Positions 1 through 44,547 of a DNA stretch of 64,000 bases are shown piece by piece. How positions within the stretch are numbered: position 1 is the first letter of the stretch; every line of letters begins with the position of its first letter. The stretch is from Octopus sinensis. Its lineage: Eukaryota. The notes beneath the pieces were generated by a model. The model saw only the letters and a list, made by a program, of their open reading frames with translations, was not told where the DNA came from and did no database searches. The position numbers were made by a program, and so were the translations under genes. The stretch spans positions 78,802,001-78,866,000 of the forward strand of contig NC_043000.1 in the NCBI RefSeq assembly GCF_006345805.1, given 5' to 3'.

Positions 1-52
1 AACTCTTCTGTGGTTAACTGAAATAATTATCAGTTGATGTTTTCCTTTACAG

Positions 53-1890
53 ACGAATGTACACATAATGGAAGGAAGTATGGAGGAAGATTCAAGATCG
101 ACTGCAACACGTGTGTATGTGGTGAATATGGCAAAGCAGTCTGTACAAATTTGCGTTGTGATTACGGGCAGGATTCTACTTGTATCTATCAAGGTAGACG
201 TTACAGAGTAGGAGATACATTCCAGCAATCCTGTAATACATGTGAATGCAAACACGGTGGTCAGGTACAATGTAGCAACAAAGACTGCACTAAACGATGT
301 ACTTACAACGGAAAGTTATACCAAGAGGGTGAAGAATTCCAAGACAAATGTAATAGATGTAAATGTCTTTCTTCTGGCTATATTCAGTGTACTAATAACG
401 TGTGTCAGTGCCAGTATAATGGTAAAGACTACAACGTTGGAGTGAGTTTCAATGATGGTTGTAAGACTTGCACCTGTCAAACTACAGGAACAGTGCAGTG
501 TAACAGTGATAGATGTGGCTGTTATTACAAAAATTCACAATATCAAGAGGGTCAAACTTTCATTGACGCTTGCAACACTTGCCGTTGTATAAACGGACAA
601 GTAGATTGTACAACAAGAGTCTGTCAATGTACTTACCAAGGACGGACCTATAATATTGGCCAAAGATTTGGTGAATGTGATGAATGTCAATGTTTGTTTA
701 GTGGTACAGTCCAGTGTTCTAACAAGCGATGCAAATGCATTTATAACGGAAATACCTACCGAATTGGAGAAACATTTCCAAACGGCTGCAACTCATGCAC
801 ATGTAAAATCGATGGTAGTGTAGACTGCACTACAAATCCATGTACCTGTACATACAAACACAGGGTTTATAGCATGGGACAGACTTTCGCTGATGACTGC
901 AATAATTGTACATGTCAACATAACGGTCAAGTTGCGTGCACATATAGAATGTGCAAATGTAGTTATAACAACCAGATTTATAATATAGGTCAAACATTTA
1001 GAAAGGGCTGTAATACGTGCACATGCCAAGCCGATGGTACCGTAGACTGCACTACAAATCCATGTACCTGTACTTACAATCATAAAGTTTACAATATCGG
1101 ACAGGCATTCACTGATGACTGTAACACTTGTACATGTCAGCATAACGGACAAGTAAAGTGCACATATAAAACGTGTCGATGTACACGGAAAGGACGGTCT
1201 TATAAAATTGGTCAGACATTTCGCGAAGATTGTAACCAATGCCAATGTTTATCAACTGGATATGTTCAATGTACAACCAACGTTTGCAAATGTACTTACA
1301 ACAACCAGCTTTATAATGTAGGTCAAACATTTAGACAAGGTTGTAATACATGTACGTGTGAAGTGAACGGTAGAGTAAGCTGTACTAATAACCCTTGTAA
1401 TTGCTATTACAATGGAAACACCTACGGAATAGGGGATTCATTTGGAAAGGATTGTAATACGTGCACATGCAAAGCCGATGGTACTGTAGACTGTACTACA
1501 AATCTATGTACCTGCAATTACAACGGCAAGCATTACGACATTGGTTCTATATGGTATAATGATTGCAACAAATGTCAGTGCACTTCTGAGGGAAGGGTTG
1601 TTTGTGAACAGAAAACATGCACGAAACCCTGTATACACAAAGGAAAAACCTATTCTGCTGGCGAAACATTTAAAGATGACTGCAACACCTGTACATGCGG
1701 ACAGTTTGGTCAAGTATCCTGTACTAAAATGTACTGTCCCCCAACTACATGCCAATATTATGGGAAAACTATCCCAGATGGAAAAACATTTATGACTCAA
1801 GATAGATGCAATGTTTGTCGATGTTCAAATGGAAATGTCAAGTGTACCAAATACGATTGTTATAAAGAGGTGAGTAAAGTTTTCTATTAG
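53..1890 (+). CDS. Terminal exon of cysteine-rich multidomain protein, copy 1 (16 tandem 6-Cys pacifastin/VWC-like repeats)
   Basis: Open frame of repeats C-x-Y-x-G-x2-Y-x2-G-x2-F-x3-C-N-x-C-x-C-x3-G-x-V-x-C-T-x3-C (96 Cys). Preceded by polypyrimidine acceptor ttttcctttacag (AG 51-52), phase 1. Stop TAG at 1888-1890. The ORF-track start at 34 is intronic. Confidence 0.9.
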
Positions 1891-2482
1891 TTTTGATCTC
1901 CCTAATATAACGTGTCTCATCCTTATATAGTGAGTCATTGTAAACAGAGACAACAACAAAGAATTGAATAATGTTTAGCATAAACATTGCAATGCTCTCA
2001 CTGTACTACACTCTACTACATTGTCGTACAAACAAAATTGTATCAGCGATTCGATTTCTGTCTTTATTTGAAGTAGTTCAATTTCATTGACCCCTACCAT
2101 TATCTTGAAGAAAGCCAATGTTCTCTTCATTGTAAACACGAGATTTTGTATATCTGCATATATTTCATTATCTATATGAAAATTATTAACTTTCAATGTT
2201 TCAACTAACTTTATTGCTACTCTTGTGAAATCAACAGACTAGCTTTCACATTGCATCATCATTGTAAGTAGCATTGCGGTATAGAGTTGTTAATTTTACT
2301 ATATATTATCTCACGTTTCAGAATATAGTTCTTGCGTTAAGCTTTTCTGCGCCTGGTGAAATATTCATACTTTGATGTAAAAGAATGTGATATATACATC
2401 TAATCTAATATACACATTTTGAAATATAAATCCAACTTGATACTTAGTCTATGTTATTGTTTTTAATTTGTATGTCCAATCT

Positions 2483-2488
2483 AATAAA
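2483..2488 (+). terminator. Candidate polyadenylation signal of copy 1
   Basis: AATAAA ~600 nt after the stop, followed by a T-rich stretch; conserved as tttatt at 41746-41751 in copy 2. An alternative AATAAA lies at 2599-2604. Confidence 0.45.
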
Positions 2489-40988: not shown

Positions 40989-41426
40989 GGAGTGGCTGTG
41001 TGGTAAGCAGCTGGTTTACCAACCACATGGTTCCGGGTTCAGTCCCACTGTATAGCACCTTGGACAAGTGTCTTCTACTATAGCCTCGGGCAGATCAAAG
41101 CCATGTGAGTGGATTTGGTAGACGGAAACTGAAATAAGCCCGTCATATATATATATATATATGTATATGTGTGTGTGTGTGTGTGTGTGTGTGTGTTGTG
41201 TGTGTGTGTATGTTTGTGTCTCTGTGTTTGTCCACCCAACATCGCTTGACAACCGATACTGGTGTGTTTAAGGCCCCATAACTTAGAAGTTCAGCAAAAA
41301 TGACCGATAGAATAAGTACTAGGCTTACAAAGAATAAGTCCTCGGGTGGATTTGCTCGGCTTAAAGGCGGTGCTCCAGCACGGCTACAGTCAAATGACTG
41401 AAACAAGTAAAAGAGTGAAAGAGTAA
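40989..41426 (+). mobile_element. tRNA-derived SINE (mirror of 2805-3228)
   Basis: Same head, body and aaaagagt tail at the mirror position; retains 8 nt deleted in the arm 1 copy. Confidence 0.85.
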
Positions 41427-42342
41427 TTCTGAAGTAATTTGACCAACTCTGTTATTCGTCATTTCCGGGTCAATAAAACAAAAGTAGTTTACAACAAATC
41501 ATTCAATTATTGAAGTATTGAAATGCTTTTCATCACAGATCTTCAAATAGATAACTCGATTATCTAAAATGGTATTGAAGAAGTTTACAGTTATAAATCA
41601 AACAAAAAGGTTCGGCATATATATGTTTTATTTAAAAACGTTATGTTTGTAATATTTACAATTCTTAAAAATATCAATATAAATTAACTGTTCTTCATCA
41701 GTAACGTCGCCTCTGAAAAGAATAAAATTACAAGAAATCAATATATTTATTAGATTGGACATACAAATTAAAAATAATAACATAGACTAAGTATCAAGTT
41801 GGAATTATATTTCAAAATGTGTATATTAGATTAGATGTATATATCACATTCTTTTACAACAAAGTATGAATATTTCACCAGGCGCAGAAAAGCTTAACGC
41901 ACGAACTATATTCTGAAACGTGAGATAATATATAGTAAAATTTACAATTCTGTATCGCAATGCTACTTACAATGATGATCCAATGTGAAAGCTAGTCTGT
42001 TGATTTCACAAGAGTAGCAATAAAGTTAGTTGAAACATTGAAAGTTAATAATTTTCATATAGATAATGAAATATATGTAGATATACAAAATCTCGTGTTT
42101 ACAATGAAGAGAACATTGGCTTTCTTCAAGATAATGGTAGGGTCAATGAATTTGAACTACTTCAAATAAAGACAGAAATCCAATTGCTGATACAATTTTG
42201 TTTGTACGACAATGTAGTAGAGTGTAGTACAGTGAGAGCATTGCAATGTTTATGCTAAACATTATTCAATTCTTTGTTGTTTTCTCTGTTTACAATGACT
42301 AACTATATAAGGATGAGACACGTTATATTAGGGAGATCCAAA

Positions 42343-43736
42343 CTAATAGAAAACTTTACTCACCTCTTTATAACAATCGTATTTGGTACACTTGACATTT
42401 CCATTTGAACATCGACAAACATTGCATCTATCTTGAGTCATAAATGTTTTTCCATCTGGGATAGTTTTCCCATAATATTGGCATGTAGTTGGGGGACAGT
42501 ACATTTTAGTACAGGATACTTGACCAAACTGTCCGCATGTACAGGTGTTGCAGTCATCTTTAAATGTTTCGCCAGCAGAATAGGTTTTTCCTTTGTGTAT
42601 ACAGGGTTTCGTGCATGTATTCTGTTCACAAACCACCCTTCCCTGAGAAGTGCACTGACATTTATTGCAATCATTATACCATATAGAACCAATGTCGTAA
42701 TGCTTGCCGTTGTAATTGCAGGTACATAGATCTGTAGTGCAGTCTACAGTACCATCGGCTTGGCATGTGCACGTATTACATCCCTTTCTAAATGTTTGAC
42801 CTATATTATAAATCTGGTTGTTATAACTACATTTGCACATTCTATATGTGCACGCAACTTGACCGTTATGTTGACATGTACAAGTATTACAGTCATCAGT
42901 GAATGTCTGTCCCATATTATATACCCTGTGTTTGTATGTACAGGTACATGGATTTGTAGTGCAGTCTACACTACCATCAATTTTACATGTGCATGTATTG
43001 CAGCCGTTTGGAAATGTTTCTCCAATTCGGTAGGTATTTCCGTTATAAATGCATTTGCATCGCTTGTTAGAACACTGGACTGTACCACTAAACAAACATT
43101 GACATTCATCACATTCACCAAATCTTTGGCCAATATTATAGGTCCGTCCTTGGTAAGTACATTCACAGACTCTTGTTGTACAATCTACTTGTCCGTCTAT
43201 ACAACGGCAAGTGTTGCAAGCGTCGGTGAAAGTTTGACCCTCTTGATATTGTGATTTTTTGTAATAACAGCCACATCTATCACTGTTACACTGCACTGTT
43301 CCTGTAGTTTGACAGGTGCAAGTCTTACAACCATCATTGAAGCTCACTCCAACGTCGTAGTCTTTACCATTATACTGGCACTGACACACGTTATTAGTAC
43401 ACTGAATATAGCCAGAAGACAGACATTTACATCTATTACATTTGTCTTGGAATTCTTCACCCTCTTCGTATACCTTTCCGTTATAAGTACATCGTTTCGT
43501 GCAGTCTTTGTTGCTACATTGTACCTGACCACCGTGTTTGCATTCACATGTATTACAGGATTGCTGGAATGTCTCTCCTAATCTGTAACGTCTACCTTGA
43601 TAGATACAAGTAGATTCCTGCCCGTAATCACAACGCAAATTTGTACAGACTGCTTTGCCATATTCACCACATACACACGTGTTGCAGTCGATCTTGAATC
43701 TTCCTCCATACCTCTTTCCATTATGTGTACATTCGT
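42343..43736 (-). CDS. Exon 2 of cysteine-rich multidomain protein, copy 2 (12 pacifastin/VWC-like repeats)
   Basis: Acceptor AG at 43738-43737; 19 aa differences from copy 1 in shared domains; 444-bp in-frame loss; all Cys retained; stop at 42345-42343. Confidence 0.9.
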
Positions 43737-44547
43737 CTGTAAAGGAAAACATCAACTGATAATTATATCAATTAACCACAGAAGAGTTAACTACTGTAAA
43801 TGAATATGTATATTCTAAAGTAATTCCTCACATACATACAGACATACAGACATACACAACACACACACACACACACACACACACGCACACACACATATAT
43901 ATATATATATATATATATACACACATGAATACATAAATACATACATACATACAACATATGTATATACATGGACGTACTTGAATATGCAGGTACGGGTATG
44001 TAAACCTATATACATATATATATTATATATAATATATATATATATATATATATATATATATACATATATATACACACATTTATATATACATACACACACA
44101 TACACACACACATATACGTATATATATATATATATATATATATATATATACACAGACATTTATACATACATCCATAAGTACATACAGACACACATACACA
44201 CAGTCACACACACACACACACACACACACTCACATATATATATATATATATTATATATAGGGGAGAGAATTTGAAAATGCAGAGGTCTTTAAAGATGTTT
44301 ATTGGCCGGTTTCAATTTTTTTTACAAAAAAGCTTATCAAAAGGCTTTGTATAACCTTTATGGTGTTAAAATTTAGTTAACATAGATGCATTAAAATACA
44401 GTGATAGAGTCTTTGACAATGATAAGAAAATGTTAAGAAATAGAATATTTGACGAAGATAGGAAAATATCAAGAGAGGCTTTGTCTAAACAGATTAGGTA
44501 AAAGTGTTCAAAATAGGCAAACTAGTTCATAAGAATCATAATCATAA

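Follow-up and report, generated by a model that had tools for sequence, protein, structure and literature searches.

A probable inverted segmental duplication with two retained pacifastin-like gene copies in the Octopus sinensis genome

Two colinear arms in opposite orientation

The window analyzed here is a 64,000-base stretch of the Octopus sinensis genome (contig NC_043000.1, positions 78,802,001 to 78,866,000), which has a G+C content of 38%, contains zero Ns, and carries many microsatellites and retroelement open reading frames (ORFs). Much of it is occupied by an inverted duplication that carries two copies of a gene for a protein built of tandem six-cysteine units. Both self-BLAST and a global alignment of the arms show that the left arm (positions 1 to 15461, plus strand) is colinear with the reverse complement of the right arm (28919 to 43788, minus strand), and a unique spacer of 13.46 kb (15462 to 28918) lies between them. 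An earlier note, made from the letters of this stretch, had described arms with these limits, a spacer of 13.5 kb, genes placed tail to tail, and private insertions in each arm, and the alignments bear out the limits, the spacer, and the gene orientation.

The arms align in ten blocks that occur in the same order on both sides. From the outer end inward, left 1 to 1027 pairs with right 43788 to 42762, 1472 to 3227 with 42761 to 40995, 3368 to 3977 with 39716 to 39106, 4145 to 5003 with 39105 to 38241, 5864 to 6018 with 38202 to 38059, 8041 to 8287 with 34365 to 34114, 12228 to 12998 with 34135 to 33356, 13740 to 14680 with 32234 to 31292, 14929 to 14979 with 30843 to 30790, and 14980 to 15461 with 29397 to 28915. 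The BLAST E values are 0 for the large blocks, which excludes a chance match of the arms, and realignment block by block yields 387 mismatches in 6867 aligned columns (5.6%). The alignable share of each ~15-kb arm is about 6.9 kb (~45%), the remainder consisting of private transposon, satellite, and microsatellite sequence. Because the left arm begins at the first base of the window, with its outer end outside, 44 kb is a minimum size for the duplication.

A pair of two-exon genes encoding tandem six-cysteine units

Each arm contains one long ORF, at 34 to 1890 on the plus strand (618 codons) and at 42343 to 43755 on the minus strand (470 codons), so that the two converge; the gene copies lie ~40 kb from each other. 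To judge from the splice signals, the gene has two exons, of which these ORFs represent the second. The same acceptor, ttttcctttacag|AC, is present in both arms, with its cut at 52/53 on the left (acceptor at 40 to 52) and at 43737/43736 on the right. The large exon, stop codon included, thus spans 53 to 1890 in the left copy, which encodes 16 units with 96 cysteines, and 42343 to 43736 in the right copy, which encodes 12 units with 72 cysteines.

The first exon of the right copy lies outside the arm. Its coding part occupies 48043 to 48100 on the minus strand, with the ATG at 48100, 19 codons plus 1 nucleotide (nt), and a donor (|gtaagt) at 48042. It ends in phase 1, the phase of the large-exon acceptor, and the spliced product is a single open frame of 484 codons. 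The N terminus that it supplies (MLYQLLLVIIALSCVNS...) is hydrophobic and, by inspection, resembles a signal peptide. A TATA-type box, TATATAAA, can be read directly off the minus strand at 48189 to 48196, ~90 nt upstream of the ATG. The guess that an exon and promoter would be found at 48044 to 48196 was thus correct. Intron 1 of this copy (43737 to 48042, minus strand) is 4.3 kb long, and just its last 52 nt fall inside the arm as visible in the window. The corresponding exon of the left copy would fall ~4.3 kb to the left, outside the window.

Downstream of the coding region, two AATAAA signals are conserved in both arms, ~590 and ~710 nt past the stop (left 2483 and 2599, within 2483 to 2604 on the plus strand; right 41751 and 41632), and they are the likely end of the 3' untranslated region (UTR). 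The window therefore holds the TATA box, exon 1, exon 2, and poly(A) signal of the right copy. Both copies also have a consensus donor, GAG|GTGAGT, that overlaps their final codons ahead of the stop (1881 to 1890 and 42343 to 42352); it may be an unused cryptic site or a sign of a longer alternative transcript. No further pacifastin-like exon was found in the window.

By profile and cysteine signature, the gene is a predicted member of the pacifastin inhibitor family. The Pacifastin_I profile (PF05375) matches the left and right products with 258 and 195 bits against a cutoff of 27.9 (E = 1.8e-78 and 1.1e-58), in 14 and 10 matched stretches. Both products also score as VWC in Pfam (PF00093; E = 8.1e-60 for the left copy). 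Units are ~37 residues long with six cysteines each, and all 16 and 12 of them fit the pacifastin signature, in which six cysteines are arranged with C-N-x-C-x-C and C-T-x3-C spacing. The loops between the fifth and sixth cysteines include CTNNVC, CTTRVC, CTYRMC, and CTKMYC, among others. The best relatives of solved structure, as judged by sequence, are the locust pacifastin inhibitors SGPI-1 (E = 7.9e-6), SGPI-2, and LCMI-II/PMP-C. In the penultimate unit, CTKMYCPP corresponds to CTRMGCPP of the SGPI-1 entry, a resemblance in the sequence of the Cys5-Cys6 loop.

The units share the C-N-x-C-x-C ... G ... C-T-x3-C spacing of the locust SGPI/PMP peptides, the crayfish pacifastin light chain, and the cephalopod salivary "pacifastins." They differ from those proteins in a longer N-terminal part that scores as VWC/FnI-like, and the spacing from the first to the second cysteine exceeds that of the insect pacifastin peptides. 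Precursors with multiple units are known in the pacifastin family, but here 12 to 16 units are encoded in one exon and the best database relative is 38% identical. The best named relatives are "kielin/chordin-like" proteins of Mytilus, at 28 to 31% identity, a label that comes from automatic annotation. Like the kielin/chordin-like VWC-repeat proteins, the octopus products consist of tandem cysteine-rich units that score as VWC; compared with the canonical VWC domain and its ten cysteines, however, the units are shorter, with six cysteines in ~37 residues. Among the 5.8 billion proteins searched, there was neither an orthologue nor a relative above 38% identity, and a search of public assemblies for exact matches to the two ORF products found no record.

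The gene product is most likely a secreted, multi-headed serine-protease inhibitor, both secretion and inhibitory function being predictions from the sequence. For annotation, the value of the locus lies in this two-exon gene pair, with predicted secreted pacifastin/VWC-like proteins of 12 and 16 units and a closest relative at 38% identity. Because pacifastins have been reported among cephalopod salivary-gland (venom) proteins, including those of the octopus posterior salivary gland (PMC7693380, PMC5554399), the pair is a reasonable candidate for expression and inhibition work.

Constraint on both copies and the probable loss of four units

The two copies differ at 34 of 1413 shared coding nucleotides (dS = 0.058, dN = 0.017, dN/dS = 0.29), with a significant deficit of replacements (binomial test, P = 8e-4). 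Replacements between the copies are all conservative, and all 72 shared cysteines are retained. There are no small indels in the coding region, against an expectation of 6.3 (P ~ 0.002), whereas the adjacent 1336 noncoding bases have six. The low dN/dS, the retention of cysteines, and the lack of small indels indicate that both copies have been under purifying selection since the duplication. The locus had earlier been described as bearing two intact paralogues: both frames are indeed open and constrained, but intactness over the full length of the gene can be followed for the right copy, the one whose exon 1 lies in the window.

The difference in unit number traces to a 444-bp in-frame segment, present in the left copy only (1028 to 1471, plus strand; placement ambiguous by ~30 nt), that encodes four repeat units. 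None of the four exceeds 77% identity to any other unit, a divergence too great for them to have been gained after the duplication. Unit 9 of the right copy (from 42831, minus strand) is chimeric, its 5' part corresponding to left unit 9 and its 3' part to left unit 13, and the point of the switch lies within a stretch of ~50 nt common to those two left units. Together, the chimeric unit and the divergence of the left-only units argue that the right copy lost four units by unequal recombination between repeat units, the direction of the change being our reading of the two sequences. The same two observations make the 444-bp difference a deletion in the right arm and not a private insertion of the left gene. 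The six-cysteine architecture was kept in the right copy despite the loss.

Arm divergence and the question of gene conversion

Raw identity between the arms is 97% at the outer end, where the gene lies, and drops inward to 90%. With microsatellite-rich stretches removed and the remainder split into transcribed and untranscribed parts, exon 2 and the putative 3' UTR (53 to 2605) contain 50 mismatches in 2108 positions (2.4%), and the six blocks of untranscribed arm contain 181 in 3649 (4.96%). The two classes differ significantly (Fisher exact test, P = 9e-7), and the six untranscribed blocks are homogeneous among themselves (chi-square test, P = 0.26). The outer-to-inner gradient was for this reason rejected as a trace of gene conversion. 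Divergence instead steps from 2.4% to ~5% at the poly(A) signals.

These figures bear on the proposal of the earlier note, an amplicon-like palindrome of a kind that permits gene conversion between its arms, and on the stronger form of it, in which such conversion maintains the palindrome and keeps the gene copies alike. An inverted geometry with a spacer permits intrachromosomal conversion, and two features of the arms could be read in its favor: the transcribed part has diverged by 2.4%, as opposed to ~5% elsewhere, and at the 3' end of the coding region the arms share an unbroken stretch of 279 identical bp (left 1615 to 1893; permutation test, P ~ 0.01), the sole candidate for a conversion tract. 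However, synonymous sites in the gene have diverged no less (dS = 0.058) than the untranscribed arm has (4.96%), and the gene therefore has not been homogenized. The zone of low divergence stops at the poly(A) signals and has a dN/dS of 0.29, as selection predicts, so that the lower overall divergence of the transcribed part can be ascribed to selection and not to homogenization. Moreover, divergence does not vary significantly among the untranscribed blocks, private sequence makes up over half of each arm, and the 444-bp difference between the genes stays uncorrected. Maintenance by conversion is consequently an unlikely account of this locus, and the proposal was not upheld.

The same conclusion follows from comparison with known palindromes. 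The primate X and Y ampliconic palindromes resemble this locus in having two long inverted arms, a unique spacer, and one mirror-oriented gene copy per arm. The arms of the sex-chromosome palindromes are kept at >99.9% identity by gene conversion, far above what is seen here, where neutral identity is ~95% and over half of each arm is private; in addition, arms of at least 15 kb rank among the shorter ones of the ampliconic range. Near-identity above 99% is what defines palindromes maintained by conversion, and these arms differ by 5.6% mismatches with ~55% of each arm private. Palindromic geometry alone does not imply homogenization driven by conversion, and the data presented here argue against it. 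We conclude that the arms have evolved independently since one duplication event, which is moderately old, and that they are now decaying. On the assumption that each site changes at a rate typical of invertebrates, a few times 10^-9 substitutions per year, a divergence of ~5% corresponds to an age of the order of 5 to 12 million years.

The inner ends of the arms

Both arms end inward in the same ~445-bp segment, here called X (left 15016 to 15461, plus strand; right 28919 to 29361, minus strand), and the two occurrences face in opposite orientations and differ by 7.6% substitutions. Just inside the left side of the spacer are two partial copies of X: Y1 (15474 to 15720) repeats its 5' half in direct orientation, and Y2 (15724 to 15990) repeats its 3' half in inverted orientation. 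In every pairing, X, Y1, and Y2 differ from one another by 6 to 8%, about the age of the arms. Within the window, X does not occur beyond the arm ends and these two copies, and apart from Y1 and Y2, both partial copies of this terminal segment, the spacer has no homology to the arms.

An initial impression that the X pair was 11 to 14% diverged had made X seem older than the duplication. That idea was rejected, as careful alignment gives 7.6%, which is not clearly above the arm average. Y1 and Y2 are either templated junction insertions of a replicative duplication or copies of X as a small mobile element.

Segments private to one arm

The arm pair constitutes a small internal clock, in which anything private to one arm is younger than ~5% neutral divergence. 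Events dated in this way are the insertion of a retroposon with a target-site duplication, the arrival of a Penelope-like element, microsatellite growth on the scale of kilobases, and the loss of the four units. The idea that each arm preserves the empty sites of the other arm's insertions, as a record of element ages, holds in part: there is one clean insertion with a target-site duplication, and the Penelope-like element is a plausible second case, but the rest is microsatellite turnover or replaced segments.

The clean insertion is a 3.9-kb segment of the left arm (8295 to 12230, plus strand), bounded by a target-site duplication of ~26 bp (8269 to 8294 and 12231 to 12256). The right arm keeps the empty site in single copy at ~34107 to 34132. 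Part of the insertion resembles 47160 to 47542 (78% identity). It lacks ORFs of at least 120 codons, Pfam matches, an A-rich tail, and any similarity to the other retroelement proteins of the window, and it is probably a nonautonomous or dead retroposon.

The Penelope-like segment is private to the right arm (34366 to 38058, plus strand) and stands in place of an unrelated 2.0 kb of the left arm (6019 to 8040). It comprises a reverse transcriptase, a weak GIY-YIG match, and then a 122-bp tandem repeat, and its coding sequence is broken into three ORF pieces in three frames (34351 to 35100, 35265 to 36410, and 36296 to 37378). Across 34351 to 37378 the sequence is strongly C skewed, with ~50% G+C compared with 30 to 35% in the surroundings.

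The remaining private segments of the right arm are a 1.28-kb stretch adjoining a 47/85-bp satellite (39717 to 40994), for which no target-site duplication was found, a 1.1-kb stretch (32235 to 33355), and a 1.4-kb block of TG/TA-rich microsatellite (29398 to 30789). On the left are a 167-bp microsatellite expansion (3978 to 4144), further microsatellites (12999 to 13739), and 140 bp of the 47/85-bp satellite. Searches of Pfam with the short ORFs of 6019 to 8040, 8288 to 12230, and 39717 to 40994, and tblastn with the retroelement proteins of the window, gave no match other than the weak GIY-YIG one of the Penelope-like element. The AT-rich satellite itself is present in both arms (3246 to 3574 and 39564 to 39714) in ~5 and ~3 units, respectively, and because its copy number differs between the arms, the length of the array has changed since the duplication.

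The left arm also contains a 753-bp near-perfect palindrome (4998 to 5750) that has no counterpart on the right. Its two arms, ~376 bp each, adjoin directly and make it 99.2% self-complementary, and it is centered on GTTAAC at ~5374, directly after an (AT)n microsatellite. This palindrome could be a foldback-type element or a long-read hairpin artifact.

Origin of the duplication

We consider it probable that a segment of at least 15 kb was duplicated once, in inverted orientation, that both paralogues were retained, and that the arms have since evolved independently. On this account, the event would have copied the two-exon pacifastin/VWC-like gene, after which the arms diverged independently, to a uniform ~5% at neutral sites, and retroelements, satellites, and microsatellites replaced or broke up over half of each arm. 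The right copy would have lost exactly four units when two repeat units recombined unequally, and purifying selection has retained both copies. The favored origin is replication template switching or a foldback at the X segment that ends both arms. Such a history agrees with the earlier view of a moderately old inverted duplication, which looks real and has ~5% neutral divergence. We class the locus as an inverted segmental duplication of an ordinary kind, moderately old, in which both paralogues are retained and which is palindrome-like in geometry alone.

The mechanism that we favor has parallels in foldback and template-switch duplications (foldback inversions and DUP-TRP/INV-DUP rearrangements). 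Here, too, both arms end in the same ~445-bp segment in opposed orientation, and Y1 and Y2, as diverged as the arms, resemble the templated insertions found at replicative breakpoints. The locus differs from those cases in its long spacer, which is largely later retroelement sequence, and in that the mechanism is read from one sequence. A more elaborate version, in which template switching or foldback at X left Y1 and Y2 as junction scars of the same age and the event also created a lineage-restricted, venom-gland-type pair of multi-headed inhibitors whose number of heads (16 versus 12) and reactive-loop residues are now diverging, is speculative, and we regard it as unlikely as a whole. A literature search on inverted duplications or palindromes in cephalopod genomes found nothing relevant.

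Several points weigh against a duplication with two functional copies. The two-copy state comes from the assembled sequence rather than from reads, and the 753-bp palindrome of the left arm is the kind of feature that long-read artifacts can produce. With its exon 1 and promoter off the window, the left copy could be 5' truncated and silent, although its constraint argues otherwise. The large exon might be nonterminal in some transcripts, given the donor at the stop codon. The direction of the four-unit change is taken from the divergence of the units rather than from an outgroup, and at a best identity of 38%, neither orthology nor function is transferable from a characterized protein.

The first two of these points would also fit an assembly artifact, in which alleles (haplotypes) or a foldback chimera were joined in inverted orientation and just one copy is real. 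High heterozygosity, including large presence/absence variants, can occur in marine molluscs, and a zero-spacer palindrome of 753 bp hints at artifacts of the hairpin type. However, the arms show ~5% neutral divergence, at least eight private segments of 0.1 to 3.9 kb, and a 13.5-kb unique spacer free of Ns, whereas foldback chimeras produce near-identical arms with no spacer, and misjoined haplotigs are usually direct and located at gaps or contig ends. The divergence of the arms is, in addition, far above the heterozygosity of octopus genomes. Both gene copies bear signatures of selection, and the coincidence of the arm ends with a defined element and its partial extra copies of the same age gives the breakpoint a biological appearance. 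An artifact is, on this evidence, very unlikely.

That the arms are copies of a large mobile element, or dispersed members of a gene family brought together by independent events, is highly improbable: retroelements abound in the window, the arms terminate inward where X does and adjoin a dispersed repeat, and their outer ends are out of view, but the shared sequence is a host-type gene with ~13 kb of downstream flank and no transposition genes common to both arms, it is colinear over the whole 15 kb with uniform divergence, and no more copies of the gene or of arm sequence occur in the remaining 20 kb of the window.

Other elements of the spacer and the right flank

In addition to Y1 and Y2, the 13.46-kb spacer contains microsatellites, a degenerate retroelement, and copies of a dispersed repeat of ~295 bp, here called Z. 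Z occurs at 28494 to 28590 and at 28628 to 28919, where it abuts the inner end of the right arm, and another copy lies at 51524 to 51819. The partial copy at 28494 to 28590 is 99% identical to 51723 to 51819, and the adjacent full copy is just 90% identical, which suggests that Z is a recently active family resembling short interspersed elements. Rfam and tRNA scans of the small repeats X and Z returned no matches.

The degenerate retroelement (19288 to 23370, plus strand) has an open gag-like ORF (19288 to 20145) and an integrase ORF (21784 to 23370), the best named relative of which is an Octopus bimaculoides protein at 69% identity. Its pol region carries two lesions, an in-frame stop between 20978 and 21051 and a frameshift ahead of the integrase ORF. 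A pair of long terminal repeats was looked for around the element and not found. Two kilobases downstream of the integrase ORF, a fragment at 25105 to 25277 has 67 to 73% protein identity to residues 55 to 111 of that ORF, suggesting that a second, more degraded related element is nested in the spacer.

Beyond the right arm, the interval from 53800 to 63962 contains four tandem copies of an ORF1-like sequence of the long interspersed nuclear element (LINE) type with a zinc-knuckle motif (~54144 to 54533, 55579 to 56367, 57610 to 58551, and 59618 to 60289). They lie directly upstream of a series of endonuclease and reverse-transcriptase ORFs (60756 to 63962), and two of the ~3.6-kb repeat units are 93 to 95% identical. 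The interval represents either an unusual arrangement with multiple ORF1 copies or a local tandem amplification. Cuttlefish was among the named matches to a LINE reverse transcriptase, at 52% identity. Finally, the G+C-rich region at 50660 to 51517, which has overlapping ORFs of 129 to 159 codons on both strands, is probably another degraded element.

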